The notes: generated from the letters alone by a model not told the origin. A stretch of DNA of 64,000 nucleotides from Ranitomeya imitator (GCF_032444005.1 NC_091283.1:715108001-715172000); one strand, 5' to 3'. Positions 12,068-53,418 are shown, numbered from the stretch's first letter. Numbers and translations: made by a program.

Positions 12068-14842
12068 CAGAGGCGTAGCTAGAGCTTTTGCCGCCCGGGG
12101 CTGTTCCCGAGTTTGGCGCCCCCCCCCCCCCGGCTCAATACACACAAAGGTTACCAAAAACGGTTTTCCTGTTTTGTAGAACTTAAACTGGGCCTAATGG
12201 TGTCACCCCCACATGCCACACCTGTGACTTAATACCACCACACCATGACCAGGCCACATAGTGACCGAATAATACTACATACAAGGGACAAATACCACAA
12301 CACCATTTCCAGACCACATATTACCACCACATAGTGACTGAATACTACAATACTGATCAGTAATAAAAAAAAACCCACAATACTATCACCATAAGTGCCA
12401 GTATTCACAGGAGATCTGTACTTAGTATGCAGTGTCTGTGTAGAGGTAATACAGTGATCACTGGTGACATTGTACACAGGACCGCTGTATATAGTATACA
12501 GTGTATAGTGTCAGTGTATAGGTAACACTGACTCACCAGTGACGTCTCTAGGTGAAGTCCTTCATCTTTCATCCAGCACAGACCGCCATCATTCCTTCCA
12601 GCCAGGACTCGTTTCTGCAGGAAATAACACAGTTATCTCGAGCTCCGCTTGCAGAACACATTACTTAATTTTTCACAACTTCTACATTACATCACATGAA
12701 GAAAAAAAGGTGATATAGTGTCACTCTGCACAGTAACAGGACCGCCCCCCCATTTAAAACAGTATACTCAAAAAATAAAATAAATACATCACTGCAGTAA
12801 TAATATCCCTTAATTAGCCCCTATGGTAATAATATTCCCCACCCTGGCCCCGTTTCTCATTCCTGGCTCCAGCCATATGTTCTCGCATCCTGCCCTCATG
12901 AGTATCCATTCTACCCCATATGATCTCCACATCCTGCCCCACCAGCCTCCATCGTATCCGTCCTGCCCCATGATCCAATCCTGCCCCGTGTCTCCAATCA
13001 TGCCCCGTATCTACATTCTGCCCATGCCTCAAGTCCTGCCCCCAGTGTGTCCAGCATATTACCCCCATGTTGTCCAGCAATCTGCCCCAGTGTGTCCAGC
13101 ATATTACCCCCATGTTGTCCAGCAATCTGCCCCAGTGTGTCCAGCATATTACCCCCAGTGTGTCCAGAAATCTGCCCCAGTATGTCCAGCACTGCCCCCA
13201 GTGTGTCCAGCAATCTGCCCCATGGTCTCCTGTATTGCCCCAGTGTGTCCAGCAATCTGCCCCAGTATGTCCAGCACTGCCCCCAGTGTGTCCAGCAATC
13301 TGCCCCATGGTCTCCTGTATTGCCCCAGTGTGTCCAGCATTCTGCCACATGGTCTCCTGTATTGCCCCAGTGTGTCCAGCAATCTGCCCCATGGTCTCCT
13401 GTATTGCCCCAGTGTGTCCAGCATTCTGCCACATGGTCTCCTGTATTGCCCCAGTGTGTCCAGCATTCTGCCCCATGGTCTCCAGTATTGCCCCAGTGTG
13501 TCCAGCAATCTGCCCCATGGTCTCCTGTATTGCCCCAGTGTGTCCAGCATTCTGCCACATGGTCTCCTGTATTGCCCCAGTGTGTCCAGCATTCTGCCCC
13601 ATGGTCTCCAGTATTGCCCCAGTGTGTCCAGCAATCTGCCCCATGGTCTCCTGTATTGCCCCAGTGTGTCCAGCATTCTGCCACATGGTCTCCTGTATTG
13701 CCCCAGTGTGTCCAGCAATCTGCCCCATGGTCTCCAGTATTGCCCCAGTGTGTCCAGCAATCTGCCCCATAGTCTCCTGTATTGCCCCAGTGTGTCCAGC
13801 ATTGCCCCAGCCCCAGACAGTCAGACATAAAGAAAAAAAAAAAAGTCCAATCCTGCCCCGTGTCTCCAATCATGCCCCGTATCTACATTCTGCCCATGCC
13901 TCAAGTCCTGCCCCCAGTGTGTCCAGCATATTACCCCCATGTTGTCCAGCAATCTGCCCCAGTGTGTCCAGCATATTACCCCCATGTTGTCCAGCAATCT
14001 GCCCCAGTGTGTCCAGCATATTACCCCCAGTGTGTCCAGAAATCTGCCCCAGTATGTCCAGCACTGCCCCCAGTGTGTCCAGCAATCTGCCCCATGGTCT
14101 CCTGTATTGCCCCAGTGTGTCCAGCAATCTGCCCCATGGTCTCCTGTATTGCCCCAGTGTGTCCAGCATTCTGCCACATGGTCTCCTGTATTGCCCCAGT
14201 GTGTCCAGCATTCTGCCCCATGGTCTCCAGTATTGCCCCAGTGTGTCCAGCAATCTGCCCCATGGTCTCCTGTATTGCCCCAGTGTGTCCAGCATTCTGC
14301 CACATGGTCTCCTGTATTGCCCCAGTGTGTCCAGCAATCTGCCCCATGGTCTCCAGTATTGCCCCAGTGTGTCCAGCAATCTGCCCCATGGTCTCCAGTA
14401 TTGCCCCAGTGTGTCCAGCATTGCCCCAGCCCCAGACAGTCAGACATAAAGAAAAAAAAAAAAAGTAAAATCCTCACCTCTCCCGTTCCTAGCGCAGGTC
14501 CGATGCAGTCAGCGTCTCTCCGGCTCTGCGACGCTCAGGACAGAGAGGCAGAGCGGCGCGCACAGTAGTGACGTCATCGCGCCCTCTGCTCTGAGACGTC
14601 GCAGAGTCAGAGGACGCTGTAGCTGCCGGCGCCGCAGGAACCAGGAGAGGTGAGTATAGAGCAGGGGGCGGGGTCCGGTGGTGGGGGGAGCTGGCCCTGG
14701 TCGTGGCGGCGGACGGCGCCGCCCGAAGATTTAAAGGGGCGTCTTTTTTTTTTTTTTTTTCTTCTCCTGCAGCGCCGGCCGCCCCCCGCATTGTGCCGCC
14801 CGGGGCGGACCGCCCCCCCGCACCCCCCTTCCTACGCCACTG
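12068..14842. mobile_element. Non-autonomous hAT element carrying a minisatellite
   Basis: Terminal inverted repeats (TIRs) CAGAGGCGTAG / CTACGCCACTG. 8-bp TSD ATTGCCAT at 12060-12067 and 14843-14850. Confidence 0.9.
12976..14466. repeat. 42-bp minisatellite within a higher-order duplication (blocks of about 870 bp and 620 bp)
   Basis: Unit CCCCAGTGTGTCCAGCAATCTGCCCCATGGTCTCCTGTATTG. The block start CAATCCTGCCCCGTGTCTCC occurs at about 12976 and 13848, and both blocks end in CCCCAGACAGTCAGACATAAAG(A)n. Confidence 0.92.
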
Positions 14843-15779
14843 ATTGCCATGTATAGTGCCCCATACAGATTTTTGGCATAAATAGTACCACTGGGTACAC
14901 CACTGTATGGAACAGAACAGTCTACCATGCTACTCCACATAATGAATGAAACTCTTTTGGTATATTTTACGTGAGACCTTATGTAAATGTTTAGTGTATG
15001 CATCCAGACCTTTTCCATGAAGGAACATGATGTGAACACATACTGTCCATGACGTGAAACGTGCCACATCTCTGACTGCCTGGCACACTGGCTATAAAGG
15101 ATTTACCAGAACAATAACCAGAAGTGTTTTGCTCTCAGATCTACTTTGGAAGCAGCAGCTCCGTAAGGGCTCAGTCACACTGGCAGATAATGCGGAAGAG
15201 TGCAATGTGAGAAGATCCCTTACTGCACTCTGACCAGTGTTATTTAATGAGGCAGAGCATGCCGCGATTGGCAGCATATCTCAGACGGCGGGCACCTATT
15301 CAAATCAGTGTGTGCGTGCAAAACATCGGACTGCATTCGGATGTCATCTGACTAATATCTCCTTCTTTTCCTCACTTGTAATCCAATTCTTGCATGCAAG
15401 AGGATCAGATAACAATAAAATGACACTCACCTCACGCTCACAGCCAAGCGTCATTAGCATATCGCACCCAATACTCTAATGTGATCTCAGCATTAGATCT
15501 GTAAAATAATTATTTAGTCTTTAACACATGAAAATTTTCTGACATTTTGTAATGAATACTATTTAGGAACTTGATTAATTTAGCATTTAGGGAGCAAATG
15601 CCCTTTAAATCTTTAGAACTATGCATCTAATCAGTATGTCTCAGAGCCAACCTCTCAATCACATTCCCTCTGATGTTAAAAGGATTGTCCTGGGTGTACA
15701 ATCATAATTGTAAAATAAGTCATCAGTATGGGATTGGTGCTGGTGTGACACTCAATACACCCACCTATTAGCTGATATA

Positions 15780-17660
15780 CAGTGGCATGTAAAAGTTTTG
15801 GCACCCCTGGTCAAAATTACTGTAATTGTGAACAGATAAGCAAGTTGAAGATTAACGGATCTCTAAAAGGTTTAAGGGTATGTTCACACGTTCAGGATTT
15901 CCATCCTTTTTTTTTCAGGACAGTTTTTTTAAAAAAACTGCAGCTCTTGGCAGAAAACGCAGGTCCTTTTTTTGTCCGTTTTTGATGCGTTTTTGATGCG
16001 TTTTTTGATGCGTTTTTTGATGCGTTTTTTTATCCTTTTTTTACTGTGTGTTTCCTAGGAAGCTTTTTAGGGCTAAANNNNNNNNNNNNNNNNNNNNNNN
16101 NNNNNNNNNNNNNNNNNNNNNNNNNNNNNNNNNNNNNNNNNNNNNNNNNNNNNNNNNNNNNNNNNNNNNNNNNNNNNNNNNNNNNNNNNNNNNNNNNNNN
16201 NNNNNNNNNNNNNNNNNNNNNNNNNNNNNNNNNNNNNNNNNNNNNNNNNNNNNNNNNNNNNNNNNNNNNNNNNNNNNNNNNNNNNNNNNNNNNNNNNNNN
16301 NNNNNNNNCCAATGGGGGTGACAAAGTGGGGGGGTGTCATTTACTATTTTTTTATTTTGATCACTGAGATCGGTTATATCTCAGTGATCAAAATGCACTT
16401 TGGAGCGAATCTGCCGGCCGGCAGATTCGGCGGGCGCACTGCGCATGCGCCCGCCATTTTGCAAGATGGCGGCGCCCAGGGAGAAGACGGCCGGACGGAC
16501 ACCGGGACGCCGGGTAAGTATAAGGGGGGGAGATTAGGGCACGGGGGGGCCTCGGAGCACTGGGGGGGGCATCGGAGCACGGGGGGGGGGCATCGGAGCA
16601 CGGGGGGGCGGGATCGGAGCACGGGGGGGCAGCCACACTCCGCCCACGCACTTCCGCCCGCTCCCCCGCACTTCCTGCTGCAGCAGTTCTGCACATCAAA
16701 TCGCAATAAAACCCGCAGATATATTTTTGATCTGCGGGTTTTACTGCGATTTTGACCTCACAATGGAGGTCTATGGGTGCAGAACCGCTGCGGTTCAGGA
16801 AGAAGAATTGACATGCTCCTTCTTTTTTCCGGGAGCAATTCAGCGCGTCTTTTTTTTTACAATTTCCGGACCATGTGCACAGTGTGTCCTGTTTTCCATA
16901 GGGTACAGTGTACTGTACCCTGCATGGAAAACAGCTGCGGAACCGCAGCGGCAAAACCGCCGCGGTTCCGCGGTAAAAAACGCACTGTGTGAACTTGGCC
17001 TAAGGTTAAATACAACACATTTCCTTTGTATTTTAAGCAAAATGAAAATACATTGTCTTTGTTTTTTCATTTTAAAAATTACAAAAAAGAAAATGGGTCA
17101 ATGCAAAAAGTTTGTCGAACCTCGGAACGCTCTGCTCAGATAACTGTGACCAAGGTTTCAATCCTTAATTAGCCTGTTAGGGTTATGGCTTGCTGACTAT
17201 CATCATGAGCAAATTTCCAAGCTTCATAAAAACCCAGCCCCCTCTAACCTTGTGACAAAAAAAACAGCAGCCTTGGGTTCTTCTAAGCAGCTGCCTAGCA
17301 CTCTGAAAAAGAAAATGGTGAACAGCCACAAAGCAGGTGAAGGCTATAAGAAGATAGCAAAGTGTTTTGAAGTAGCCATTTCCTCTGTTAGAAATGTAAT
17401 TAAGAAATGGGAACAACCATGGTCAAGATACGATCTGGAAGACCAAACAACATTTCAATTAGAGCTGCTTGTAGGATTGCTAGAGAGGCAAATCAGAACC
17501 ACTGCTTGACTGAAAAAAGCCTTAAGAAAGATTAAGCAAACTATAGAGTTGTGGTATCTTGTTCTACTGTTCAGAGACACATGCACAAATATGACGTTTA
17601 TGGAAGAGTCATCAGAAGAAAACCTCTTTCTGTTCTGCGTAGTGTGAGCATAGTGTGAGC
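15780..17660 (+). mobile_element. Tc1-like 5' fragment interrupted by a Harbinger-like composite (about 15875-17000)
   Basis: TA|CAGTGGCATGTAAAAGTTTTGGCACCCC terminus and an N-terminal transposase fragment (HKAGEGYKKIAKCFEVAISSVRNVIKKW, ORF 17252). The inserted block begins AGGGTATGTTCACACG. Confidence 0.65.
16078..16308. other. Assembly gap or masked run (231 N)
   Basis: Read directly from the sequence. Confidence 0.99.
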
Positions 17661-22023: not shown

Positions 22024-23882
22024 TTAAATTTTATTCATTTCATGTTAAAAGACAACATCATGTTTCGGCTGTGCAATGCCTTTCTGAAGCCAGAACAGCC
22101 CTATTCCTGTTTGTGAATTCGGAACATCTTGCACATCCGAAACGTGATGTTACCTTTTATGATAAAATAAAACAAAAAGATAAGCTTCAACCATTTCATG
22201 ACATACGATGTAAATGTACAGCGCATGGAAGTACAAGAAAGAGGTATGCAAAACAGGGACGACCAAACAAGAGACGTTTTATAAAAGTATGATGAACATA
22301 TGAGAAGCAAACAAATGAAAAGCATTTTATAAAAGAAAACCAAACATGGCTCCCCAGAACCACAAGCCAAAACAACCTATGATATGGTTGCTAATGGTCC
22401 CAGAACAGGATTGTGGAGCATATAAAGTAGAGTTTATGTAAACATAAACATAAAAGAGCAAAAGAGCTAGGTGGAATAATATATGGGCAAGATTCAACAG
22501 AATCAAATCTAATGAAGGACAAGAAGACGGGAAAAAGATATATCCCATATCTCGTATGTACAGTATGCTAAATGCACAATGTCCTCAAGACATATATTAA
22601 TGCAAAGTATAATAGAGGCAGCAACTGAAACAAAAGTACAAAACCAACATGGACAATAGTAGGCAAAATAGCAAGTCAGAGAACAACAGCAAAAAATACT
22701 TAACATAATCTCTGGAATTTTTTTTACCAATTAAATAAAAAAGAACCTATACATGTTTGGTACATACAATCTTGTAATGACCTGAAGAATCATAATGGTA
22801 GGTCAGTTTTACCATTTGGTGAACATGGTAAAAAACAAAAGAAAACAATTGTGGAATTGCACTTTTTTTTTGCAATGTCACTGCACTTTGATTTTTTTTT
22901 CTTTTTTTCCAGTAGAAAATATGGTACAGGTGAATCTCACCAAATTAGAATATCATCAAAATGTTAATTTATTTCAATTCTGCAATACAAAAAGTGAAAC
23001 TCCTATATTAGATAGAGTCATTACAAATGTATTTCAATTCTGCAATACAAAAAATGAAACTCGTATATTAGATATAGTCATTACAAAGTGATCTACTGTA
23101 TTTCAAGTATTTATTTCTGTTAAGGATTATGGCTTACAGCTAATGAAAACTCAAAAGTCATTGTCGCAGTAAATTATGATACTTTATAACACCAGCTTGA
23201 AAAAATGATTTTAAGAGGGGGCGTGGCCTGAGCTCTGGCGATGTAGGAGGTAAGAGCTCTGAGCTCCCACTAAAGAACCCAAAAAGCGACGAAAAAAATC
23301 CACAAGAGGCATTTATTTATAATTTTTATTGAGTTATTATCCCTCTACAACAGAATTGGAACATTTTACTGTCAAAAAATGCTTTCAATCAAGAATTTTT
23401 ACTTCATAGAATGTAGGAGATAAAACCAGAGACAACATTTGAAAAGCGGAGGGATACCTTTACCTATTTTTATTTTTTTTTCTCACACCAGAATTCAACT
23501 TTAAGGTCAGTGCTTGCATTTTCCACCTAAGAGCCAATTGGACAGTTATCCCTGGTCATTTGGGTGCCCATATTGCTGAGATTTCTTTTTATTTGGGTCT
23601 CTTGTGCACTGAAACAGCATTCTTCCCTATGGTGTAAAGGCGGAGGGATACCCACTTCATATATTTTTTGACTGTAGGATATAATTAAATTGATGACCAG
23701 TGCACCTAGTTTTCACTCAGTGGACAACTTAGATTTATCATCCTGTCATTTTGACACATATATCTGAAAGATTAGAGGTGGCACAACCGAGATTTACCAG
23801 TAAAACCCGGCTGGAATACTGCACAGCTTAACAGCATTCTCACCTGAGGTAGAAAGTAGTTCCGGCAGCTCCATTTGACTTA

Positions 23883-24378
23883 AGGTACCGTCACACTTAG
23901 CGACGCTGCAGCGATACCGACAACGATCCGGATCGCTGCAGCGTCGCTGTTTGGTCGCTGGAGAGCTGTCACACAGACAGCTCTCCAGCGACCAACGATG
24001 CCGGTAACCAGGGTAAACATCGGGTAACTAAGCGCAGGGCCGCGCTTAGTAACCCGATGTTTACCCTGGTTACCATCCTAAAAGTAAAAAAAACAAACAG
24101 TACATACTTACCTACAGCCGTCTGTCCTCCAGCGCTGTGCTCTGCTCTCCTCCTGTACTGGCTGTGAGCACAGCGGCCGGAAAGCAGAGCGGTGACGTCA
24201 CCGCTCTGCTTTCCGGCTGACCGACGCTCACAGCCAGTACAGGAAGAGTGCAGAGCACAGCGCTGGAGGACAGACGGCTGTAGGTAAGTATGTACTGTTT
24301 GTTTTTTTTACTTTTAGGATGGTAACCAGGGTAAACATCGGGTTACTAAGCGCGGCCCTGCGCTTAGTTACCCGATGT
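23883..24378. mobile_element. PIF/Harbinger-like MITE, right end deleted
   Basis: TTA|AGGTACCGTCACACT start. Near-identical to 52694-53418 but stops at CCCGATGT, where L1 ORF2 resumes. Confidence 0.85.
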
Positions 24379-24645
24379 GTGTTGGAAAACTCTTCTTAAA
24401 CCTCCAAGAAAAATTTTTGACAAATCAGAGCAAATTATGAAATTTCCTCTTCATCTATTGGCATTGATATATGATCTTCCACTTTCAGAAATTTGGGCCA
24501 AATCAGGCATTAAAAAAGTTGGACATATCTATAACGGGAGGAATTTTCTCACCTTTAGCGAAATTAAGACTAAATTTAACTTACCCTCATCTGAATTAAT
24601 ATTCTTTTTAACCCTGAAAGAGCATATACAGAAATTACTGACTAG

Positions 24646-26508
24646 TAGTGTTGAGCATTCCGATACCGCAAGTATCGGGTATCGGCCGATACTTGCGGTA
24701 TCGGAATTCCGATACCGAGATCCGATACTTTTGTGATATCGGGTATCGGTATCGGATACATAGGGATCTGTAAAATAAAGAATAAAAATAAAAAATATTG
24801 ATATATTTACCTCTCCGGCGGCCCCTGGACTCAGCGCGGGTAACCGGCAGGCTTCGTTGTTCAAAATCAGCGCTTTTAGGACCTGAGAATCACGTCCCGG
24901 CTTCTGATTGGTCGCAGGCCGCCCATGTGACCGCCACGCGACCAATCACAAGCCGCGACGTCACCGCAAGCTATTGACGCGCTCATTTTTAAAAATGAGC
25001 GCGTTAATGGCTTTGAAAGACATAGCGGCTTGTGATTGGTCGCGTGGCCGCGACCAATCACAAGCCGCAACGTCACCGCAAGCTATTGACGCGCTCATTT
25101 TTAAAAATGAGCGCGTCAATAGCTTGCGGTGACGTCGCGGCTTGTGATTTGTCGCGGCCACGCGACCAATCACAAGCCGCTATGTCTTTCAAAGCCATTA
25201 ACGCGCTCATTTTTAAAAATGAGCGCGTCAATAGCTTGCGGTGACGTCGCGGCTTGTGATTGGTCGCGGCCACGCGACCAATCACAAGCCGCTATGTCTT
25301 TCAAAGCCATTAACGCGCTCATTTTTAAAAATGAGCGCGTCAATAGCTTGCGGTGACGTCGCGGCTTGTGATTGGTCGCGGCCACGGTCACATGGGCGGC
25401 CCGCGACCAATCAGAAGCCGGGACGTGATTCTCAGGTCCTAAAAGCGCTGATTTTGAACAACGAAGCCTGCCGGTTACCCGCGCTGAGTTCAGGGGCCGC
25501 CGGAGAGGTAAATATATCAATATTTTTTATTTTTATTCTTTATTTTACACCTCCCTATGGATCCCAGGGCCTGAAGGAGAGTTTCCTCTCCTTCAGACCC
25601 TGGGAACCATGAGAATACCTTCCAATACTTGATGTCCCATTGACTTGTATTGGTATCGGATATCGGTATCGGCGATATCCGATATTTTTCGGGTATCGGC
25701 CGATACTATCCGATACCGATACTTTCAAGTATCGGACGGTATCGCTCAACACTGTTGTGAATTCTGTGGCTGAGTTCACTTCTGTGGTCACAAGTGGTAT
25801 TGCAGTCTCTGGGCTTCCTCCCTCAGGTGTTTTGGTGAGCTCGTTGGCTGCCTTGCTATTTAGCTCCACCTGAGTCTGTCTTCCTTGCTCCTTGTCAATG
25901 TTCCAGTGTTGGATCTGAGCTACTGCATCTTTCCTTGGGCCTGCTGCTCTGCTAGATAAGTGCTTCTAGTTTGTTTTCTGTTTTTTCTGTCCAGCTTGCT
26001 ATTAACTTTTGCTGGAAGCTCTGAGAAGCAAAGGGGTGCTCCGCCGTGCTGTTAGTTCGGCACGGTGGGTCTTTTTGCCCCTTTGCGTGGTTTTCGTTTT
26101 AGGGTTTTTTGTAGACTGCATAGTTCTCTTTGCTATCCTCGCTCTGTCTAGAATATCGGGCCTCACTTTGCTGAATCTATTTCATTCCTACGTTTGTCTT
26201 TTCATCTTGCTAACAGTCATTATATGTGGGGGGCTGCCTATTCCTTTGGGGTATTTCTCTGAGGTAAGTCAGGCTTGTATTTCTATCTTCAGGCTAGTCA
26301 GCTCCTCAGGCAGTGTCGAGTTGCATAGGTAGTGATAGGCGCAATCCACTGCTGCTTATAGTTGTGTGAGGATAGATCAGGTACTGCAGTCTACAGAGAT
26401 TCCACGTGTCAGAGCTCGTCCTATTGTTTTTGGTTATTGCCAGATCTCTGTATGTGCGCTGATTACTGCACGCTGTGTTGCCTGATTGCCGGCCATAACA
26501 CAACACTA
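24646..26508. mobile_element. Non-autonomous hAT element (TAGTGTTGAGC termini)
   Basis: 8-bp TSD CTGACTAG at 24638-24645 and 26509-26516. Palindromic interior with alternating hairpin units of about 112 bp. The right TIR is interrupted by a solo LTR. Confidence 0.92.
25753..26500 (+). mobile_element. Solo LTR, related to the LTRs of the 42041-47791 provirus
   Basis: TGTTGTGAATTCTGTGGCTG ... CATAACA, with a 6-bp TSD CAACAC at 25747-25752 and 26501-26506. Confidence 0.92.
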
Positions 26509-30359: not shown

Positions 30360-30543
30360 NNNNNNNNNNNNNNNNNNNNNNNNNNNNNNNNNNNNNNNNN
30401 NNNNNNNNNNNNNNNNNNNNNNNNNNNNNNNNNNNNNNNNNNNNNNNNNNNNNNNNNNNNNNNNNNNNNNNNNNNNNNNNNNNNNNNNNNNNNNNNNNNN
30501 NNNNNNNNNNNNNNNNNNNNNNNNNNNNNNNNNNNNNNNNNNN
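30360..30543. other. Assembly gap or masked run (184 N)
   Basis: Read directly from the sequence. Confidence 0.99.
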
Positions 30544-37739: not shown

Positions 37740-38267
37740 AGGGAAACTGTCATCCCCAAAATCAAAGATGAGCTAAGCCCACCAGTATCAGGGGCTTATC
37801 TACAGCATTCTGTAATGCTGTAGATAAGCCCCCTATGTATCCTGAAAGATGAGAAAAAGAGGTTAGATTATACTCACCCGTGGGCGGTCCGATCCGATGG
37901 GCATCGTGGTCCGGTCCGGGGCCTCCCATCTTCTTACGATCACGTCCTCTTCTTGTATTCACACTGCGGCTGCGGCGCAGGCGTACTTTGTCTGCCCTGT
38001 TAAGGGTAGAGCAAAGTACTGCAGTGCACAGGCGCTGGGCCTCTCTGACCTTTCCCGGGGCCTGCGCACTGCAGTATTCCCTCAACAGGACATCATCATA
38101 AGAAGATGGGAGGCTCCGGACCAAACCGTGACGCCCATCGGACCGGACAGCAGCGGAACCGCCCCTGGGTGAGTATAATCTAACCTCTTTTTCTCATCTT
38201 TCAGGTTACATCGGGGGCATGCCGGTGGGCTTAGCTCATCTTCGATTTTGGGGGTGACAGGTTCCCT
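37740..38267. mobile_element. Kolobok/T2-family palindromic MITE
   Basis: TTAA|AGGGAAACTGTCA ... TGACAGGTTCCCT|TTAA, with arms inverted along most of the length. Confidence 0.9.
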
Positions 38268-41352: not shown

Positions 41353-42700
41353 TATATAATATCAAACAAGGCTTTCAACTTTTTTTTGTCCAGCCTGAAA
41401 AGTGTTTGTGGTACAACAATATTACTGTTTATTCATGGAAATTTATTTCCATGGGTGAACCTACCAAGTTCCAACTAATGTAACATTCTTTTACAGCTTT
41501 TTGATGGGGTGGTGGTAAGATGATAGTTTTTGGTTTCTTTTATTTTAATTTAAAAACATTATACAAACATTTTACTTGTTTTATATGTGCTTTACTATGC
41601 CAGTCTGGCAGTTATACACTCCTCAACTATAGTTTTTTGGGCAGGCGGAAATCTGCTTTAACCAAAAATCTGAAAATAAATTATTACACTAAATTTTAAA
41701 ATCATTTAATGGTGCAGGTCTGTTTGGAAATGCCTGTTTAAGTTGTCATATTGAAGGAACATACACATCACACCTAATTAAAAGACAGTAGCTTCTTTGG
41801 TCATCAAGTGTAACATGCCTAAAATTTTTGGTTGATTTCATATTTTTCAAAGATTGGACAAGTGTGGTACATTTTGTTGATCCAAAATATAGACTTGTGA
41901 TAATTGTCAAAATGTACTATACATTACATGAAAAAGTGATACCAAGATGTGGTAGAGTGAGAAAAAATATCTTCATGCCATGTTAAAAATGTGGGAGCCC
42001 CTAGCACGGCCCCTAACACGACCTTCACTGCTAGCAGCACTGTTATGTTTGCTAATGACAGGTGTTATGAAGGCAATCCAGAAACACAGTGTGCTTAGCG
42101 ATCAGAGCGCACACAGTGATCTGACAAATACCCAAAAATACAAGAACGAGCTCTGAGACGTGGAAACTCTGTAGACTGCACACCTGATCCTATCCTAAAC
42201 ACAACTAAAAGCGGCTGTGGATTGCACCTAACAACTACCTAGGCAACTCGGCACAGCCTAAGAAACTAGCTAGCCTGAAGATAGAAAAATAGGCCTGACT
42301 TGCCCCAGAGAAATTCCCCAAAGGAAAAGGCAGCCCCCCACATATAATGACTGTGAGTAAGATGAAAAGACAAAACGTAGGGATGAAATAGATTCAGCAA
42401 AGTGGGGCCCGATATTCTAGGACAGAGCGAGGACAGTAAAGCGAACTTTGCAGTCTACAAAAAACCCTAAAGCAAAACCACGCAAAGGGGGCAAAAAAAA
42501 ACCCACCGTGCCGAACTAACGGCACTGCGGTACACCCTTTGCGTCTCAGAGCTTCCAGCAAAACAAAAGACAAGCTGGACAGAAAAAAAGCAACAAAAAA
42601 GCAAAAAGCACTTAGCTATACAGAGCAGCAGGTCACAGGAACAATCAGAAGAAGCTCAGATCCAACACTGAAACATTGACAAGGAGCAAGGATAGCAGCA

Positions 42701-45700
42701 TCAGGCGGAGTTAAGTAATGAAGCAGTTAACGAGCTCACCAGAACACCTGAGGGAGGAAGCTCAGAAGCTGCAGTACCACTTGTGACCACAGGAGTGAAT
42801 TCAGCCACAGAATTCACAACAGTACCCCCCCATTGAGGAGGGGTCACCGAACCCTCACCAGAGCCCCCAGGCCGACCAGGATGAGCCGCATGAAAGGCAC
42901 GAACAAGATCGGAAGCATGAACATCAGAGGCAAAAACCCAGGAATTATCTTCCTGAGCATAACCCTTCCATTTAACCAGATACTGGAGTTTCCGTCTAGA
43001 AACACGAGAATCCAAAATCTTCTCCACAATATACTCCAATTCCCCCTCCACCAAAACCGGGGCAGGAGGCTCAACAGATGGAACCATAGGTGCCACGTAT
43101 CTCCGCAACAACGACCTATGGAATACATTATGTATGGAAAAGGAGTCTGGGAGGGTCAAACGAAAAGACACAGGATTGAGAACCTCAGAAATCCTATACG
43201 GACCAATAAAACGAGGTTTAAATTTAGGAGAGGAAACCTTCATAGGAATATGACGAGAAGATAACCAAACCAGATTCCCAACACGAAGTCGGGGACCCAC
43301 ACGGCGTCTGCGATTAGCGAAAAGTTGAGCTTTCTCCTGATCAAATTGTCCACTACCTGAGTCCAGATCTGCTGCAACCTATCCACCACAGAATCCACAC
43401 CAGGACAGTCCGAAGACTCAACCTGTCCTGAAGAGAAACGAGGATGGAACCCAGAATTGCAAAAAAAATGGAGAAACCAAGGTAGCCGAGCTGGCCCGAT
43501 TATTAAGGGCGAACTCAGCCAACGGCAAAAAGGACACCCAATCATCCTGGTCTGCAGAAACAAAACATCTCAGATATGTTTCCAAGGTCTGATTGGTTCG
43601 TTCGGTCTGGCCATTAGTCTGAGGATGGAAAGCCGAGGAAAAGGATAGGTCAATGCCCATCCTACCACAAAAGGCTCGCCAAAACCTTGAAACAAACTGG
43701 GAACCTCTGTCAGAAACAATATTCTCAGGAATGCCATGCAACCGAACCACATGCTGAAAGAACAAAGGTACCAAATCAGAGGAGGAAGGCAATTTAGCCA
43801 AGGGCACCAGATGGACCATTTTAGAAAAGCGATCACAGACCACCCAAATGACTGACATCTTTTGAGAAACGGGAAGGTCAGAAATGAAATCCATCGAAAT
43901 ATGTGTCCAAGGCCTCTTTGGGACCGGCAAGGGCAAAAGCAACCCACTGGCACGAGAACAGCAGGGCTTAGCCCTAGCACAAATCCCACAGGACTGCACA
44001 AAAGTACGTACATCCCGTGACAGAGATGGCCACCAGAAGGATCTAGCCGCTAACTCTCTGGTACCAAAGATTCCAGGATGACCAGCCAACACCGAACAAT
44101 GAAGTTCAGAGATAAGTTTATTAGTCCACCTATCAGGGACGAACAGTTTCTCTGCTGGACAACGATCAGGTTTATTCGCCTGAAATTTTTGCAGCACCCG
44201 CCGCAAATCAGGGGAGATGGCAGACACAATGACTCCTTCCTTGAGGATACCCGCTGGCTCAGATAAACCCGGAGAGTCGGGCACAAAACTCCTAGACAGA
44301 GCATCCGCCTTCACATTTTTAGAGCCCGGAAGGTACGAAATCACAAAGTTGAAGCGGGCAAAAAATAACGACCAACGGGCCTGTCTAGGATTCAAGCGCT
44401 TGGCAGACTCGAGATAAGTCAAGTTCTTATGATCAGTCAATACCACCACGCGATGCTTAGCTCCTTCAAGCCAATGACGCCACTCCTCGAATGCCCACTT
44501 CATGGCCAGCAACTCTCGATTGCCCACATCATAATTACGCTCAGCGGGCGAAAACTTCCTGGAAAAGAAAGCACATGGTTTCATCACTGAGCAATCAGAA
44601 CCTCTCTGTGACAAAACCGCCCCTGCTCCAATCTCAGAAGCATCAACCTCGACCTGGAACGGAAGAGAAACATCTGGCTGACACAACACAGGGGCAGAAC
44701 AAAAACGACGCTTCAACTCCTAAAAAGCTTCCACAGCAGCAGAAGACCATTTAACCAAATCAGCACCCTTCTTGGTCAAATCGGTCAATGGTTTGGCAAT
44801 GCTAGAAAAATTACAGATGAAGCAACGATAAAAATTAGCAAAGCCCAGGAACTTTTGCAGACTTTTCAGAGATGTCGGCTGAATCCAATCCTGGATGGCT
44901 TGGACCTTAACTGGATCCATCTCGATAGTAGAAGGGGTAAAGATGAACCCCAAAAATGAAACTTTCTGCACACCGAAGAGACACTTTGATCCCTTCACAA
45001 ACAAAGAGTTAGCACGCAGGACCTGAAAAACCATTCTGACCTGCTTCACATGAGACTCCCAATCATCTGAGAAGATCAAAATGTCATCCAAGTAAACAAT
45101 CAGGAATTTATCCAGATACTCACGGAAGATGTCATGCATAAAAGACTGAAACACAGATGGAGCATTGGCAAGTCCGAACGGCATCACTAGATACTCAAAA
45201 TGACCCTCGGGCGTATTGAATGCAGTTTTCCATTCATCTCCTTGCCTGATTCTCACCAGATTATACGCACCATGAAGATCTATCTTAGTGAACCAACTAG
45301 CCCCCTTAATCTGAGCAAACAAGTCAGATAACAATGGCAAGGGATACTGAAATTTAACAGTGATCTTATTAAGAAGGCGGTAATCAATACACGGTCTCAG
45401 CGAACCATCCTTCTTGGCTACAAAGAAGAACCCTGCTCCCAGTGGTGATGACGATGGGCGAATATGTCCCTTCTCCAGGGATTCCTTCACATAACTGCGC
45501 ATAGCGGCGTGTTCGGGCACGGATAAATTAAATAATCGACCTTTAGGGAATTTACTACCAGGAATCAAATTGATAGCACAATCACAATCCCTATGCGGAG
45601 GTAGAGCATCGGACTTGGGCTCTTCAAATACATCCTGATAATCAGACAAGAACTCTGGGACCTCAGAAGGGGTGGATGACGAAATCGACAAAAATGGAAC

Positions 45701-46900
45701 ATCACCATGTACCCCCTGACAACCCCAGCTGGATACCGACATGGAATTCCAATCCAATACTGGATTATGGGTTTGTAGCCATGGCAACCCCAACACGACC
45801 ACATCATGCAGATTATGCAACACCAGAAAGCGAATAACTTCCTGATGTGCAGGAGCCATGCACATGGTCAGCTGGGCCCAGTATTGAGGTTTATTCTTGG
45901 CCAAAGGTGTAGCATCAATTCCTCTCAATGGAATAGGACACCGCAAAGGCTCCAAGAAAAACCCACAACGTTTAGCATAATCCAAATCCGTCAGATTCAG
46001 GGCAGCGCCCGAATCCACAAACGCCATGACAGAAAACGACGACAAAGATCATATCAAGGTAATGGACAGAAGGAATTTGGACTGTACAGTACCAATGACG
46101 GCAGACCTAGCGGACCGCTTAGTGCGCTTAGGACAATCAGAAATAGCATGAGTGGAATCACCACAGTAGAAACACAGACCATTCAGACGTCTGTATTCCT
46201 GCCGTTCAACTCTAGTCATAGTCCTATCGCACTGCATAGGCTCAGGTTTAACCTCAGGCAGTACCGCCAAATGGTGCACAGATTTACGCTCGCGCAAGCG
46301 TCGACCGATCTGAATGGCCAAAGACAAAGACTCATTCAAACCAGCAGGCATAGGAAATCCCACCATGACATCCTTAAGAGCCTCAGAGAGACCGTTTCTG
46401 AACAAAGCTGCCAGCGCAGATTCATTCCACTGAGTGAGTACTGACCATTTCCTAAATTTCTGACAATATACTTCTATATCATCCTGACCCTGGCACAAAG
46501 CCAGCAAATTTTTCTCAGCCTGATCCACTGAATTAGGCTCATCGTACAGCAATCCGAGCGCCAGGAAAAACACATCGACACTACTCAATGCAGGGTCTCC
46601 TGGCGCAAGAGAAAATGCCCAGTCTTGAGGGTCGCTGCGCAAAAAAGAAATAATAATCAAAACCTGTTGAATAGGATTACCAGAAGAATGAGGTTTCAAG
46701 GCCAGAAATAACTTACAATTATTTTTGAAACTTAGAAACTTAGTTCTATCTCCAAAAAACAAATCAGGAATAGGAATTCTTGGTTCTAACATAGATTTCT
46801 GATCAATAGTATCTTGAATTTTTTGTACATTTATAACGAGATTATCCATTGAAGAGCACAGACCCTGAATATCCATGTCCACACCTGTGTCCAGAATCAC
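42701..46900 (-). pseudogene. gag-pol polyprotein with two in-frame stops and two frameshifts
   Basis: Gag CCHC (CFYCGDSTHAISDC), PR FVDSGAA, RT YLDD, RH VEVDASE, IN HHCC and catalytic core, chromodomain YLVKWKGY. TGA at 46049-46051, TAG at 44720-44722, an extra base in A8 at 43461-43468, and a small deletion at about 43340. Confidence 0.92.
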
Positions 46901-46999
46901 CCAAATGTCTAGGGGGGAAAAAAAAAAGTGAACACAGAGCAGAAAAAAAAAAATGATGTCAGAACTTTTTCTTTCCCTCTATTGAGAATCATTAGTTAG

Positions 47000-47008
47000 G
47001 CTCCTTGT
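47000..47008 (-). promoter_or_regulatory. Putative self-priming primer-binding site (PBS) of the provirus
   Basis: ACAAGGAGC lies 2 nt after the 5' LTR and is complementary to GCTCCTTGT in the LTR (47649-47657). No tRNA-type TGG PBS is present. Confidence 0.7.
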
Positions 47009-49375
47009 ACTGTTATGTTTGCTAATGACAGGTGTTATGAAGGCAATCCAGAAACACAGTGTGCTTAGCGATCAGAGCGCACACAGTGATCTGACAAATA
47101 CCCAAAAATACAAGAACGAGCTCTGAGACGTGGAAACTCTGTAGACTGCACACCTGATCCTATCCTAAACACAACTAAAAGCGGCTGTGGATTGCGCCTA
47201 ACAACTACCTAGGCAACTCGGCACAGCCTAAGAAACTAGCTAGCCTGAAGATAGAAAAATAGGCCTGACTTGCCCCAGAGAAATTCCCCAAAGGAAAAGG
47301 CAGCCCCCCACATATAATGACTGTGAGTAAGATGAAAAGACAAAACGTAGGGATGAAATAGATTCAGCAAAGTGGGGCCCGATATTCTAGGACAGAGCGA
47401 GGACAGTAAAGCGAACTTTGCAGTCTACAAAAAACCCTAAAGCAAAACCACGCAAAGGGGGCAAAAAAAAAACCACCGTGCCGAACTAACGGCACGGCGG
47501 TACACCCTTTGCGTCTCAGAGCTTCCAGCAAAACAAAAGACAAGCTGGACAGAAAAAAAGCAACAAAAAAGCAAAAAGCACTTAGCTATACAGAGCAACA
47601 GGTCACAGGAACAATCAGGAGAAGCTCAGATCCAACACTGAAACATTGACAAGGAGCAAGGATAGCAGCATCAGGCGGAGTTAAGTAATGAAGCAGTTAA
47701 CGAGCTCACCAGAACACCTGAGGGAGGAAGCTCAGAAGCTGCAGTACCACTTGTGACCACAGGAGTGAATTCAGCCACAGAATTCACAACACAGCACCAT
47801 CACTAGTAGAACCAAATGCAGGTCACACTTGGCAGGAGTATTAATGGGGAGAATGCAGAGAGCATGATGAAATATACATCATGTGATTAAATGCCCATTC
47901 TTCCACACACTCTTCCAAATTTGAAGGTTCTGTGGGCTCCTTCTACTAACTCTGATCTTTATTTTCTTCCATACATTTTCGGATTCGGGTCAGGTGATTG
48001 GCTGGGTCATTCTAACAGTTTTATTTTCTTTTTCTGAATCCAATTGAGATTCCTTGGCTTTGTGATTGGGATCATAGTCTTGCTAAAATGTCTACCCTTG
48101 TTTTATCTTCATCATCCTGCCTTGATACAGGTCAAATTTTGACACTTTATTAACTTTCCAGAAATCATTACAAAACCGTAATGATCTGTCCAACTTTGGA
48201 ATTAGTACAATGGATTAGCCGACTCACTCCTCAACTCCTCAATGACTCTTAGCTAGAGGATTTTGTCACCTCCTTCATGACAGCTTGTCTCCGGGCCTTC
48301 GTCACATGGTATGGTTTCATTTGTAACCTTACCGGAGGCTCGGTGACTATGTTATGTCAGATCACAGATATACAACCGGGCAGTTTCAAGAATTCGTCTG
48401 TATTCCGCTGCACTAAATTCCAACCCTCCCATCTCTGCTGTTTCTAGAGAGTGTTGCTTATCCTCACCTCATTTTCAATCTTTCCCGGGCTGGTTCCAGA
48501 GGGTCCAAAGAAGATACAACCGGAGTCGTATGCTACCATCTTCTGTATTATCCAGCATCTTTCCACTCATCTACTCCGTGACATCACCACTCTTCAGACT
48601 CTTCAAGTCACTCTATTCTCTATGTGTGAGCCAGAAGTCTCTTTTACAATGTAAGTCTATGGAGCTGTGTTCTGACGCCCCATAGGCTTTTTTTGGAAAG
48701 CCACTTTTGGGTCGCACAGAGCACTGTGTGACCTGAACATTCTGAAGAGTGGAGTGGCGCTGTATCCCGAAGAAGGTGATAGAAGATGAGTATATTAACG
48801 CACACAATAGTACCTACACAAATGCAAAGTCTTAGGGAAAATGGGGCTTCTTTATTGTGTTTTCCACTTCTTGTTTCACACCATAATAGTGTACTATGCG
48901 GTAGAAGAAACTACCTAGTGCTCCAAGAGTAGTAGTCTTCCCTATGTGCTCCTTCACAGTGTTGAAGCGCGCACTGTGTGCATCCTGCAGAGCAATGTTG
49001 CACACTGTGGATGCAGGATGCAGTTAAAAGTGGTGGTCACTCAGAAACTGGTTGCTTCCCGAATACTTAGTTCTAGTGATGCAACTGTTTTTGGGCTTAT
49101 TTTACAGTGGCTCTTCTAGAGAAATGTGATCTACGTTCATATTAGGCATTATACCCATAGTATTAATTACATTTTATTAAGTCTTTTCTGATGTCCCAAT
49201 AGGTTTCTTTTCTTACCATGCAAAAATGTTAACAAGCAGAAAGGAAGTTTAAAAATTATTGTTACTGTAAGTGAAGCAGTGAGTATATAGAGTTATTTTC
49301 ATCAGCAGTGTCCTAAGCATATATAACACTCTAAAAAAAGATAATTTATGACACTCATAACACCTTTATTTTCAG

Positions 49376-49980: not shown

Positions 49981-50944
49981 AAGGGTTGAGCGAAACGGGT
50001 CGGCCATTTTCAGAAGTCGCCGACTTTTGGCAAAGTCGGGTTTCATGAAACCCGACCCGACCCCTGTGTGGGGTCGGCCATGAGGTCGGCGATCTTCTGA
50101 ATCTGGTATCGGAATTCCGATCCCGAGTTCCGATATGTTTGCAATATCGGAAATCGGTGTAGGAATCCATATTTAAGTGTAAAATAAAGAATTAAAATAA
50201 AAAATATTGCTATACTCACCCTCGGACGCGCCCTGGTACTAACCGGCAGCCTTCCTTCCTTAGAATCAGCGCGTGAAGGGCCTTAGATGACGTCGCGGCT
50301 TGTGATTGGTCGCGCGACCGCCCATGTGACCGCTCGCGCGACCAATCACAAGCCGCGACGTCACCAAAGGTCCTTCAAGCGCTGATTCTTAGGAAGGAAG
50401 GCTGCCGGAAAGAAGCAGGGCGCGTCCGAGGGTGAGTATATACCTAATATACCTAATAGGAATATACTCACCCTCGGACGCGCCCTGCTTCTTTCCGGCA
50501 GCCTTCCTTCCTAAGAATCAGCTCTTGAAGGACCTTCGGTGACGTCGCGGCTTGTAATTGGTCGCGCGAGCGGTCACATGGGCGGTCGCGCGACCAATCA
50601 CAAGCCGCGACGTCATCTAAGGCCCTTCACGCGCTGATTCTAAGGAAGGAAGGCTGCCGGTTAGTACCAGGGCGCGTCCGAGGGTGAGTATAGCAATATT
50701 TTTTATTTTAATTCTTTATTTTACACTTAAATATGGATCCCAGGGCCTGAAGGAGAGTTTCCTCTCCTTCAGACCCTGGGAACCATTGGAAACCCAATGC
50801 ACTGCATTGGGTTTCGAGTTTCGGCCGACCCCGACCCCGACTTTTTTTATAGGATCGGCCGATTTCACTCGACCCGACTTTTGAAAAAGTCGGGTTTTGT
50901 GAAACCCGACCCGATCCTATAAAAGTAAAAGTCGCTCAACCCTA
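49981..50944. mobile_element. Non-autonomous hAT element with a doubly palindromic core
   Basis: (A)AGGGTTGAGCG ... CGCTCAACCCTA, with an 8-bp TSD ATCAGCAC at 49973-49980 and 50945-50952. Confidence 0.92.
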
Positions 50945-52693
50945 ATCAGCACCCCTCTTTACTTGTCTCCCACTCCTTCCCAATTTTCTGCACCTACAAC
51001 TAATTTTTCTATGATATGTTGGTTTGAGAAAACTCACAGACAGACTGCAGACATGTGTCTTCTGATGTTTTGGTCCCTTTTCCCTGAACACCAATGGTAA
51101 ATAAATGTCTACTCATTTTCCCATGTGAAAATGTAAAATCTGGGGCTAAAGCACTGCTCTTGTGGTAAAAATGTAATCATTTTTCTTTTCTTCACTGCTC
51201 AATGGTGTAAATGTCTGGGACACGCCCGTGGTGTCAAAATGATCACTTCTTCTGTAGATGAATTTATTGAGAGGTGTAGTTTGTAAAATGTGTTCATTTA
51301 AGGAAGGGTTCTGCTGTTCTGGCACCACAGGAGCCAGGGACAGACACTGACAGTGAAGGGCCCATGAGCTGGACATTTTATGGCTCATTCAGATGATTGT
51401 GTATCATGTACTGTCCGTTGAGCTTGAGCAGCATGTAGAATCAGTCATCATGCAATTTTTCATACGTATTGATGATCTGTGTGAAAAAAATTGCAGCATG
51501 TAATAGTCTGGTCTGTTTTATAAAGCCAACTAGTGCATGTCAATTGCAGTCAGCCATTGTACTTTTTTGCCATGCACACAGAACCTGTCACAGCTGCAAT
51601 TTGCGGACATGACTGGCTCTTCTGTCAGGCGACCACTGCTGACAAAATGTTATTTTAAGTGGTTGTCCATCACTCGGATAACCTTGTGTCATCCAACATG
51701 TTCCCTTAGTAAAATAACAATCTTACGTTTTATTGGATAGTACTCGGACCAGTGTTGTACTATGGGCAGTGCTGACCAGCACTTTTTTGTTATGCCGATT
51801 CAGCATGAGAAAAAATCGAAGCATGGTGAGATTGGCTCCGATATTCAGATCACGCGCACCTATACACATCGATTAGTGCATGTGAAACATTGTCATTCCG
51901 ATTACCGCAGACATAAGCAATGACGAAGATGGAGATATTATGTTCACCGTCTTCTGCACACCTGTGATCCGATTCTCTCACACTAGATTATCGGATCACA
52001 CTAAGGTGACACTCAGAGCACCCTCTGACAGAGTTTGTTCTGAGTGACAATAGCATAATCAGCCTTTTTCTGTCACATTAAAATCTACTGCCATGTGACC
52101 CCTGCCTGATACTCATCTCTAGTGCATCACTGTTCAAGCAGTGTCGTCACTCGCTTTCCCAGGGCTGACGTGACATTATGTATCACAATTGCTGCGGCCA
52201 ATCAGCGCTGGCTTCACTATACCTTCCTTCAGACAAAGCAGACATCAAGAGGAAACCAGAGCTGATTGGCCGCAGGGATCGCATGACATAATCTCACGTC
52301 CTGGGAGTGCGAGTGACGACACTGCTGGAACAGCACCGGCACTGGAGATGAGCAGAGGTGTTGTTATCTTACTGGTGGCAAATAATCAGATTGAGAAGGT
52401 GGTGTCCAAGTAGTGAACAACCCCATTAACATAAATTAAGTTTTATTTTGTTAAAATTCTTACATATTTTTCACACGAGACTGTAATTGTCAGACTTGTC
52501 CATAGTCCTCTTTTCAGCTTCCTCTCCAAGATGTGATTCATTGGTACAGAAGACACTTTTTCTTCCTCCCCTGTCAGCCCACCAAAGATGTTCTTATAAA
52601 GCAAAGTCAACGACTGGCTGACAGAGGATGAGACCCCAATATCCTTTTGTGCAGGTCTTTGAACTTTACAAGAGGCCCTCTATAGATGTCTTA

Positions 52694-53418
52694 AGGTACC
52701 GTCACACTAGACGATATCGCTAGCGATCCGTGACGTTGCAGCGTCCTCGCTAGCGATATCGTCCAGTGTGACAGGCAGCAGCGATCAGGCCCCTGCTGTG
52801 CTGTCGCTGGTCGGGGAAGAAAGTCCAGAACTTTATTTCGTCGCTGGACTCCCCGCACACATCGCTGAATCGGCGTGTGTGACACCGATTCAGCGATGTC
52901 TTCACTGGTAACCAGGGTAAACATCGGGTAACTAAGCGCAGGGCCGCGCTTAGTAACCCGATGTTTACCCTGGTTACCATCCTAAAAGTAAAAAAAAACA
53001 AACACTACATACTTACCTACAGCCGTCTGTCCTCCAGCGCTGTGCTCTGCACTCCTCCTGCTCTGGCTGTGAGCGTCGGTCAGCCGGAAAGCAGAGCGGT
53101 GACGGCACCGCTCTGCTTTCCGGCCGCTGTGCTCACAGCCAGTACAGGAGGAGTGCAGAGCACAGCGCTGGAGGACAGACGGCTGTAGGTAAGTATGTAG
53201 TGTTTGTTTTTTTTTACTTTTAGGATGGTAACCAGGGTAAACATCGGGTTACTAAGCGCGGCCCTGCGCTTAGTTACCCGATGTTTACCCTGGTTACCAG
53301 CATCGTTGGTCGCTGGAGAGCTGTCTGTGTGACAGCTCTCCAGCGACCAAACAGCGACGCTGCAGCAATCCGGATCGTTGTCGGTATCGCTGCAGCGTCG
53401 CTAAGTGTGACGGTACCT
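52694..53418. mobile_element. Complete PIF/Harbinger-like MITE
   Basis: TTA|AGGTACCGTCACACT ... AGTGTGACGGTACCT|TTA, with nested palindromes. Confidence 0.92.

Follow-up and report, generated by a model that had tools for sequence, protein, structure and literature searches.

Introduction

Engineered activation-tagging transposons of the Sleeping Beauty T2/Onc type contain a promoter and, downstream of it, a splice donor, and cassettes of this kind are already known for natural retroelements. The MaLR/MT long terminal repeats (LTRs) of mouse oocytes, as described in PMC13408016 (Franke et al. 2017), contain a promoter and a splice donor, and the major splice donor of foamy virus is a binding site of U1 small nuclear RNA (U1) that silences the polyadenylation (poly(A)) signal in the 5' LTR (PMC3694450; reviewed in PMC3826338). 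Introners are transposons that create introns (bioRxiv 10.1101/2022.06.06.494994/PMC9860276; PMC12130899), and transposon-derived genes have been found to hijack bidirectional CpG-island promoters (PMC2777200). In a poison frog related to the species of this study, introns of more than 20 kb are saturated with transposons, and the question of how they are processed was left open (PMC6278860). Here, we analyzed 64,000 nucleotides of the Ranitomeya imitator genome (GCF_032444005.1, NC_091283.1:715108001-715172000; referred to as the window), in which small non-autonomous DNA elements contain the word GGTRAGTAT (ATACTYACC on the opposite strand), a near-perfect U1 site and candidate 5' splice site (referred to as the donor). 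A preliminary description of this DNA had reported the word in unrelated MITEs (miniature inverted-repeat transposable elements), pointing outward from them, and both points were borne out. The donor-bearing modules may plausibly, although by no means assuredly, be miniature CpG-island-type promoter cassettes in which a short first exon leads to a strong U1 site; where a module is a palindrome, the best explanation of its sequence would be a bidirectional cassette.

Results

Enrichment and U1 complementarity of the word

Fifteen exact matches to GGTRAGTAT were found on the two strands of the window, whereas dinucleotide-preserving shuffles (n=100) contained 1.0 on average and 3 at most, in agreement with the chance expectation of about one match given in the preliminary description. 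All of the 14 matches reported there were recovered with the right coordinates and strands. The fifteenth (2583-2591, + strand) had been missed; since it was located outside any repeat or GC-rich core, it was set aside as not being part of the feature, and is consistent with the single match or so predicted by chance. As noted earlier, the matches were not all independent. When copies and arms were collapsed by local alignment of the flanks (100 nt to either side of a site) against shuffled controls, the matches fell into seven contexts: A (24104-, 24283+, 53009-, and 53188+), B (37870- and 38168+), C (50212-, 50431+, 50464-, and 50683+), D (16513+ and 30113-), E (14649+), F (34043-), and the lone match (G, 2583+). 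When flanks were clustered more loosely, at 55% ungapped identity within 30 nt, three clusters resulted; this threshold was too permissive for GC-rich sequence and was replaced by local alignment. Fourteen of the 15 sites therefore belonged to six repeat families (A to F). In a ranking of every 9-mer with one transition-degenerate position, with copies collapsed and a first-order Markov expectation, GGTRAGTAT was found in seven contexts versus 0.78 expected (Poisson P = 1.8e-5; 1.6e-4 and 1.3e-3 for six and five contexts, respectively), and ranked approximately 17th among non-trivial 9-mers, while the related words GRTGAGTAT and RGTGAGTAT were 4th and 6th, respectively. Most of the words placed above it in the complete ranking were A/T-rich and of low complexity.

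Using the U1 register CAG|GTAAGTAT, 12 sites had at least 10 of 11 pairs, versus 1.65 in shuffles (maximum, 4). All 15 sites matched positions -1 to +8, and those borne by transposable elements paired at 9-10 of 11 positions (G at +3 counted as wobble). The shorter word GGTRAGT was found at 25 sites in approximately 16 contexts, seven of which had AT at +7/+8 (5-7% expected); this dinucleotide was present in six of the six families with CpG-rich cores, but only in one of the 10 other contexts (Fisher, 9e-4). AT at +7/+8 completes the pairing to the U1 5' end, and its excess provides a test that is independent of the raw count. Rfam gave no match to U1 or to any other RNA family at the gathering score anywhere in the window, so that the sites are not U1 pseudogenes, and the sequence past ATACTYACC did not continue like that of U1.

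Orientation and composition of the modules

In the palindromes A, B, C, E, and F, the site on the - strand was in the left arm and that on the + strand in the right arm, so that both pointed outward, and this layout agreed with the earlier account for the first (24104/24283) and second (53009/53188) copies of A, for B (37870/38168), and for C (50212/50431 and 50464/50683). Variant or decayed partner sites at homologous positions of the arms were located by a one-mismatch search. Among all palindromic elements in the window, every one with a CpG-rich core had an outward site with at least 9 of 11 pairs and inward sites with at most 8, whereas palindromes without such cores had 7-8 in both directions. 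The GC content dropped from 0.60-0.74 to 0.18-0.46 across the site in A, B, C, a relative of C (referred to as C'), and the left arm of E, in which 43-73% of the 30 nt downstream was T. D, the right arm of E, and F were GC-rich on both sides, and G-runs (4-7 per 100 nt) followed the site in D and the right arms of E and F. The earlier statement that each site sits at the boundary between a GC-rich core and an AT-rich arm was, thus, correct where the GC content dropped, but not for the sites that were GC-rich on both sides. Two dispersed copies each of A, C/C', and D and one each of B, E, and F were present in the window; the modules of A, C, D, E, and F were embedded in larger repeats (one or two copies each), and none of the open reading frames (ORFs) of the window tested against Pfam overlapped a module.

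The cores had a GC content of 0.55-0.65 and a CpG observed/expected ratio (o/e) of 0.7-1.5, compared with 0.44 and 0.51, respectively, for the window. Sixteen CpG-island-like stretches (minimum GC content, 0.55; minimum CpG o/e, 0.6-0.75; minimum length, 200 nt) were found in the window, 10 of which were donor-bearing elements and short (170-890 nt), and 14 of the 15 sites were inside such stretches, which together made up 10.6% of the window. Promoter-type words were found 45-150 nt upstream of the sites and in sense with them: the cAMP response element (CRE), NRF1, YY1, CCAAT, and E-box words. The corresponding set of factors (CRE/ATF, NRF1, YY1, CCAAT, and E-box) typifies bidirectional CpG-island promoters. 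The cores of A and E were both centred on TGACGTCA (24193 and 14569, respectively), and GCGCATGCGC followed by AAGATGGCGGC was found in sense 48-69 nt before the site in D. AAGATG[GC] in D, B, and F and AAGAAGATG words in B and F were located 17-65 nt upstream. Several of these words exceeded their numbers in shuffles: GCGCATGCGC (2 versus 0), AAGATGGCGGC (2 versus 0.03), TGACGTC (14 versus 3.2), and the CCAAT-box word (20 versus 3.2). A CRE word (CGRTGACGT) was also found in the unbiased k-mer ranking (10 sites in four contexts; 0.18 expected). Promoter elements upstream of and in sense with the donor were, thus, present at the level of motifs. As for coding potential, A, C, C', and E lacked an ATG open to the donor in their putative outward exons, whereas D, B, and F had one, with a phase of 0 and 2 in the two copies of D and of 1 and 0 in the left and right arms of B. 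A coding first exon was rejected because this phase differed between copies and arms, indicating that nothing was conserved as a coding sequence.

Conservation and independence of the families

Between partner arms or copies, the 9-mer differed at no position in B and D, at one in E and F, and at two (one within R) between C and C', while the aligned flanks differed by 13-28% with many indels. With indel columns also counted, the contrast between the 9-mer and its flanks was significant (3e-5); by mismatches alone it was borderline (see Discussion), and the excess conservation of the 9-mer is partial. In the two copies of D, the block of NRF1 and YY1 words and the 9-mer were kept, and approximately 25 nt between them and the sequence downstream were scrambled. 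The two arms of B did not differ in the interval from the donor to CAG (0/40), in contrast to the upstream sequence (14/69 and an 11-nt indel; Fisher, 0.002).

Descent of all sites from one captured module, which the preliminary description had named as grounds for abandoning its proposal, was rejected in the window, because the flanks were unrelated except for those of A and E, between which there was only a weak upstream relationship (z 6.7), and the cassettes of D and B could not be aligned (z of at most 1.5). Taken from the sequence, this pattern is hard to explain as neutral: independent families would imply convergence, and an old shared origin would mean that the word has outlived its surroundings. 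A search for further copies in metagenome contigs with a family-A arm word outside the 9-mer gave six matches, which were in GC-rich bacterial sequence with unrelated flanks and were attributed to chance.

Predicted folding and sequence downstream of the donors

Read-through RNAs of the palindromes were predicted to form near-perfect hairpins of -226 (A), -267 (B), and -206 kcal/mol (one C unit), with z scores of -30, -22, and -25, respectively, in which the donor was fully paired to its complement in the other arm. On the other hand, outward half-RNAs starting from the core had z scores of +0.2 to +0.8, and the donor was predicted to be largely unpaired. In host transcripts, the donor should, therefore, be masked by the palindrome, and it should be exposed only in RNA initiated in the core, which favours a function in a first exon over U1 recruitment on host introns. 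This argument is a thermodynamic one, and weakens the latter possibility without disposing of it.

Acceptor-like sites were defined as a polypyrimidine tract followed by YAG, the background of which was one per 490 nt per strand of the window. The distance from the donor to such a site was 34-36 nt in A and B, 43 and 50 nt in the left arms of C' and F, respectively, 123 nt in the right arm of E, and 170 and 531 nt in the first and second copies of D, respectively. In B, CTAAC, a polypyrimidine tract, and CAG were all found within 36 nt past the donor. Separately, the intervals of 34-36 nt were fully conserved between arms (24104-24145, 37835-37878, 50162-50220, and their partners). An interval of this length is too short for a normal vertebrate intron. 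U-rich tracts and G-runs just past a donor are classical enhancers of U1 recruitment, and this role may be played by the U-rich tracts of the modules and by the G-runs in D and the right arms of E and F. In C and C', AATAAA/ATTAAA was found 3-4 times per 500 nt on the inward-reading strand versus 0-1 on the outward-reading strand, and the arms of the C unit carried AATAAA only on the former. This is the direction expected of the U1/poly(A) axis, as far as the sequence indicates; no such asymmetry was seen in the other families. Concerning the alternative that T runs act as RNA polymerase III terminators, no A- or B-box-like words were seen by eye, and no formal search was made.

Individual modules

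Two copies of A were found in inverted orientation relative to each other (97.8% identity over 499 nt). In the first, an exact GGTAAGTAT (TAG|GTAAGTAT) in the left arm (24104-24112, - strand) points outward and is followed by a U-rich tract, with AG 34 nt later; the core (24113-24282; GC 0.62) is a palindrome centred on GGTGACGTCACC, with TGACGTCA at 24193-24200 and CCGGAAA words flanking the centre; and a second exact GGTAAGTAT in the right arm (24283-24291, + strand) also points outward, the donors being 85-88 nt from the centre. The second copy has exact GGTAAGTAT in both arms (53009-53017, - strand; 53188-53196, + strand), and its central word, TGACGGCA, differs from TGACGTCA by one substitution. 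The TAG|GTAAGTAT of A was considered as a recursive splice site, and this was rejected because the 25 nt upstream are purine/G-rich; the other families lack AG at -2/-1.

C is a double palindrome (50162-50741) formed by two units joined head to head (50162-50449 and 50454-50741), each with a core of CCAAT and CGCGACGTCAC words (GC 0.61; CpG o/e 1.3) and AT-rich arms. All four arms contain exact GGTGAGTAT pointing outward from their units: 50212-50220 (-) and 50431-50439 (+) in unit 1, and 50464-50472 (-) and 50683-50691 (+) in unit 2. C' (24754-25564; 80% identical to C) has, at the homologous position of both arms (24803-24811, - strand; 25507-25515, + strand), the variant GGTAAATAT, in which +5 is A instead of G, again outward. 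Its core (24812-25506; GC 0.56; CpG o/e 1.47) consists of CCAAT-box and CGCGACGTCAC repeats in palindromic sub-repeats of 112 nt. As a side observation, 24933-25386 of this core is a dense array of approximately nine CCAAT words in 450 nt. A and C/C' modules neighbour each other at both loci (23882-25610 and 50105-53419), but the intervening DNA is not collinear, and a single composite unit of A and C was, therefore, rejected; this neighbourhood may be due to chance or to preferential insertion of the modules near each other.

B (37740-38267) is a T2/Kolobok-type MITE with inverted AGGGAAAC termini. The Kolobok/T2 label given in the preliminary description, the one superfamily label that was confirmed, was appropriate because TTAA duplications (37736-37739 and 38268-38271) and an AGGGA terminus were both present, in line with the published definition (PMC6004289). 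Its CpG-rich core (37879-38167; GC 0.61) is flanked by exact, outward GGTGAGTAT in the left arm (37870-37878, - strand), with AAGAAGATGG 54 nt upstream, and in the right arm (38168-38176, + strand). The sequences upstream of these two donors differ by 13%, apart from the 11-nt indel.

In E, the left arm has the variant GGTGAGGAT with one mismatch (14470-14478, - strand), which points outward and is followed by a 13-nt T run; the palindromic core (14479-14648; GC 0.65; CpG o/e 1.05) contains TGACGTCA at 14569-14576; and the right arm has exact GGTGAGTAT (14649-14657, + strand; GAG|GTGAGTAT, 10/11) with G-runs downstream. An acceptor-like polypyrimidine tract and CAG (14745-14772, + strand) close the 123-nt intron-like interval after this donor. 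The left arm adjoins a 42-nt satellite array (12974-14535; two blocks repeated at 872 nt with 98% identity), into which the outward T run leads directly. In F, the left arm has exact, outward GGTGAGTAT (34043-34051, - strand) with AAGAAGATGC 17 nt upstream, the core contains a CACGTG E-box word at 34121-34128, and the right arm has a decayed, outward partner, GGTGACTAT (34277-34285, + strand), followed by G-run repeats.

The first copy of D has, in sense with its donor on the + strand, GCGCATGCGC (NRF1-type, 16441-16450) and AAGATGGCGGC (YY1-type with ATG, 16463-16473), followed by exact GGTAAGTAT (16513-16521, + strand; CGG|GTAAGTAT, 10/11), tandem repeats of G-runs (16523-16633), and the acceptor-like CAG at 170 nt. 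The second copy has exact GGTAAGTAT at 30113-30121 (- strand) and the NRF1/YY1 block at 30157-30189. The two runs of N in the window (16078-16308 and 30360-30543) adjoin these copies on the same, promoter-upstream side, 205 and 239 nt, respectively, from the sites. Since each D cassette is wholly on one side of a gap, the finding holds whether or not the sequence is continuous across the gaps. Their shared position suggests a sequence that assembles poorly, possibly a second arm of D or a long homopolymer.

The only strong inward sites of the palindromes, at 27750 and 28169, were considered as the same device and rejected, because they belong to a fold-back of Tc1 coding sequence that is unrelated to the CpG-core cassettes. 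This fold-back (27495-28440) has arms with 90% identity and inward CAG|GTGAGTTT sites.

Other elements of the window

The window was dense in transposons, and no host exons were detected in it. An intact Tc1/Sleeping-Beauty-like transposase of 340 amino acids (10-1032, - strand) showed 96-98% identity to Ranitomeya imitator proteins; its identity to catfish and salmonid copies was still 84-89%, which is unusually high between frog and fish and, as a sequence comparison, is compatible with horizontal transfer. A Ty3/gypsy LTR retrotransposon (42039-47308, - strand) had gag, reverse transcriptase, RNase H, and integrase ORFs; its ends (42039-42338 and 47009-47308; 300 nt compared) showed 100% identity, suggestive of a very recent insertion, and a fragment of approximately 750 nt (25751-26501) was 85% identical to this element. 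A hAT transposase was found at 61856-63894 (- strand); directly beside its ORFs were blocks of tandem repeats with units of 66/67, 206, and 190 nt (58530-61790), which may be internal repeats of that element. An interstitial, telomere-like tract of degenerate (TTAGGG)n (31223-31396) was followed by approximately five tandem copies of a unit of approximately 388 nt (31420-33394).

Discussion

A proposed promoter, first exon, and U1 site

From the motif, its enrichment and orientation, the composition of the cores, the promoter words, the partial excess of conservation, and the predicted folds, we infer a mechanism in which transcription would start in the cores. The GC- and CpG-rich core would bind ubiquitous or germline-active factors (CRE/ATF, NRF1, YY1, NF-Y/CCAAT, and E-box), and transcription would proceed outward; after a first exon of approximately 45-150 nt, the RNA would expose a 5' splice site that could pair with U1 at 9-10 of 11 positions and is followed by a U-rich tract or G-runs. 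U1 bound near a promoter licenses productive transcription, through the U1/poly(A) axis and promoter-proximal 5' splice sites. U1 at this position in the modules would likewise license productive outward transcription and allow splicing to the next host acceptor, while the palindrome would conceal the donor from host read-through RNA. The pay-off for a non-autonomous element may be an open, unmethylated state that is accessible to transposase, with alternative first exons of the host as a by-product. The earlier suggestion that these MITEs splice into host exons is supported as to layout, since the sites 45-150 nt past promoter words in CpG-rich cores fit putative first-exon donors. A more far-reaching version, in which unrelated families of DNA transposons have converged on a self-carried bidirectional CpG-island promoter, a U1 anchor licensing outward RNAs, and masking by the palindrome, appears doubtful as a whole.

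Several points weigh against a promoter cassette with a first exon and a U1 site. Approximately 220 patterns in the all-word scan, mostly A/T-rich, had P values equal to or below that of GGTRAGTAT, and 1.8e-5 would not remain significant after correction for all words; therefore, the case rests on a word defined beforehand by its biology and on tests that are independent of the count. The orientation test was weak (two-sided p of 0.03-0.06 for 5-6 families), and the excess conservation of the 9-mer by mismatches (4/45 versus 19% in the flanks) was borderline (p = 0.05). The high CpG content may only reflect the youth of the elements, because the arms and copies of A and C are 95-99% identical. 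The promoter words, several of which are short, were picked after the sequences had been read, and are, therefore, supportive rather than decisive. A and B have acceptor-like sites at 34-36 nt that the cassette leaves unexplained, and D looks one-directional in the sequence visible beside the gaps. Transcription brings a non-autonomous element no obvious gain, which makes the benefit speculative, and all support comes from one 64-kb window at the sequence level.

Alternative explanations

DNA transposons insert preferentially near the 5' ends of genes and sometimes copy flanking DNA, and several families may independently have taken fragments of host promoters, exons, and donors in this manner, which became palindromic later by fold-back repair, with the donor as a passenger. 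Such a neutral capture is rather unlikely in our judgment, in spite of the resemblance of the cassettes to housekeeping 5' ends: D, in particular, combines NRF1 and YY1 words, an ATG in a Kozak context, and a donor, copies and arms differ in the phase from the ATG to the donor, and young copies would account for the high CpG content. However, AT at +7/+8 is approximately at background in ordinary donors, yet was found in six of the six families, and fold-back predicts inward sites as frequently as outward ones, whereas all were outward. It also leaves the retention of the 9-mer between diverged arms and copies amid scrambled neighbours to be explained, and palindromes centred exactly on TGACGTCA are unlike a captured host promoter.

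According to the preliminary description, the modules may recruit U1 irrespective of orientation: one of the two sites would act on host pre-mRNA in either direction, suppress premature polyadenylation, and ease the tolerance of the element in introns. The major splice donors of retroviruses silence nearby poly(A) sites via U1 (PMC3694450 and PMC3826338), and the tolerance of the transposon-packed introns of more than 20 kb in poison frogs is an open question (PMC6278860), both of which speak for this proposal. The full-length complementarity to U1 (9-10/11) exceeds what splicing needs, and AATAAA on the inward strand of the C arms is located upstream of the far-side donor, as it would predict. 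Nevertheless, we consider it distinctly unlikely. For the palindromic families, the predicted read-through hairpins (-206 to -267 kcal/mol) would bury the donor, which disfavours the proposal without refuting it, and D appears to be one-directional, and, thus, not orientation-independent. The fixed distance from promoter words in CpG-rich cores is not accounted for, the poly(A) hexamer asymmetry is limited to C and C', and with no host exon detected in the window, an intronic setting is unproven.

Genes of vertebrate DNA transposons commonly have introns in the 5' untranslated region. The modules may, accordingly, be remnants of the genes of autonomous elements, of which the promoter, a non-coding first exon, and the first intron were kept in deletion derivatives and had a function only in the parent; the pairs of donor and acceptor-like sites in the same direction in E (123 nt) and the two copies of D (170 and 531 nt) are compatible with this. 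We regard it as very unlikely because transcription would be directed toward the nearest terminus rather than inward to a transposase gene, no autonomous relative with the cassette was found in the window (the cassettes have nothing in common with its hAT and Tc1 genes), and the same extended 9-mer in six families would still need explaining. Least probable of all is a small number of chance 9-mers that were multiplied by copying and palindromy and noticed afterwards: although the 15 sites reduce to seven contexts (five with CpG-rich cores when A is combined with E and the lone match is dropped), some 220 patterns had an equal or smaller P, and site 2583 looks like pure chance, five to seven contexts versus 0.78 expected (P from 1.3e-3 to 1.8e-5) and the co-location in 10.6% of the window, the single orientation, and the AT bias, each independent of the raw count, argue against it.

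If the more far-reaching version of convergent, self-carried promoters is true, small non-autonomous transposons would exploit the logic of promoter directionality of the host (U1 versus poly(A)) to stay open and mobile, and thousands of copies would seed alternative first exons and U1 sites in very long frog introns. This would bear on the transcription and tolerance of the transposon-filled poison-frog introns of more than 20 kb (PMC6278860). If promoter cassettes with a U1 site are borne out, they would represent a convergent, host-mimicking device of promoter and U1 site in non-coding parasites and a large natural source of first exons; if the modules are captured host gene starts instead, a strong capture bias would still be worth documenting.

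Comparison with known systems

Our searches of the literature gave no account of vertebrate MITEs with cassettes of a promoter and a donor, nor of bidirectional ones or of ones with complete complementarity to U1. The T2/Onc transposons are similar in that a promoter followed by a donor within a DNA transposon drives and splices into host exons; they differ in being man-made and one-directional, with acceptors and poly(A) traps, whereas the layout in the frog is natural, palindromic, and present in several families. The T2-MITE/Kolobok elements of Xenopus share the TTAA target and AGGRR terminus with element B, and the words "promoter" and "intron" are absent from the text that describes them (PMC6004289).

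The MaLR/MT LTRs, as far as the account in PMC13408016 goes, are also mobile elements in which a promoter is combined with a short first exon and a donor, and the transcripts of which can be spliced to downstream host exons. These are one-directional LTRs of retrotransposons and are supported by transcripts, whereas the frog cassettes, known from sequence, are small non-autonomous DNA elements that are mostly palindromic and CpG-island-like and have an unusually complete complementarity to U1. The major splice donor of retroviruses is similarly a strong U1 site shortly past the promoter of the element, with a role of U1 beyond splicing, but it protects the element's own genomic RNA, while the frog elements are non-coding with no known RNA stage. 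Introners resemble the frog modules as non-autonomous DNA elements with spliceosomal signals under apparent selection; they are not known from vertebrates, and their donor and acceptor are placed for self-excision. An introner-type interpretation was rejected because the donors are at the inner boundaries of the core and read outward on both sides, that is, away from the centre, and the element cannot, therefore, be excised as an intron. The transposon-derived genes of PMC2777200 offer a parallel to the shielding of parasitic DNA from silencing by association with a bidirectional CpG-island promoter; these genes land beside a CpG island of the host, whereas the frog elements appear to carry their own.

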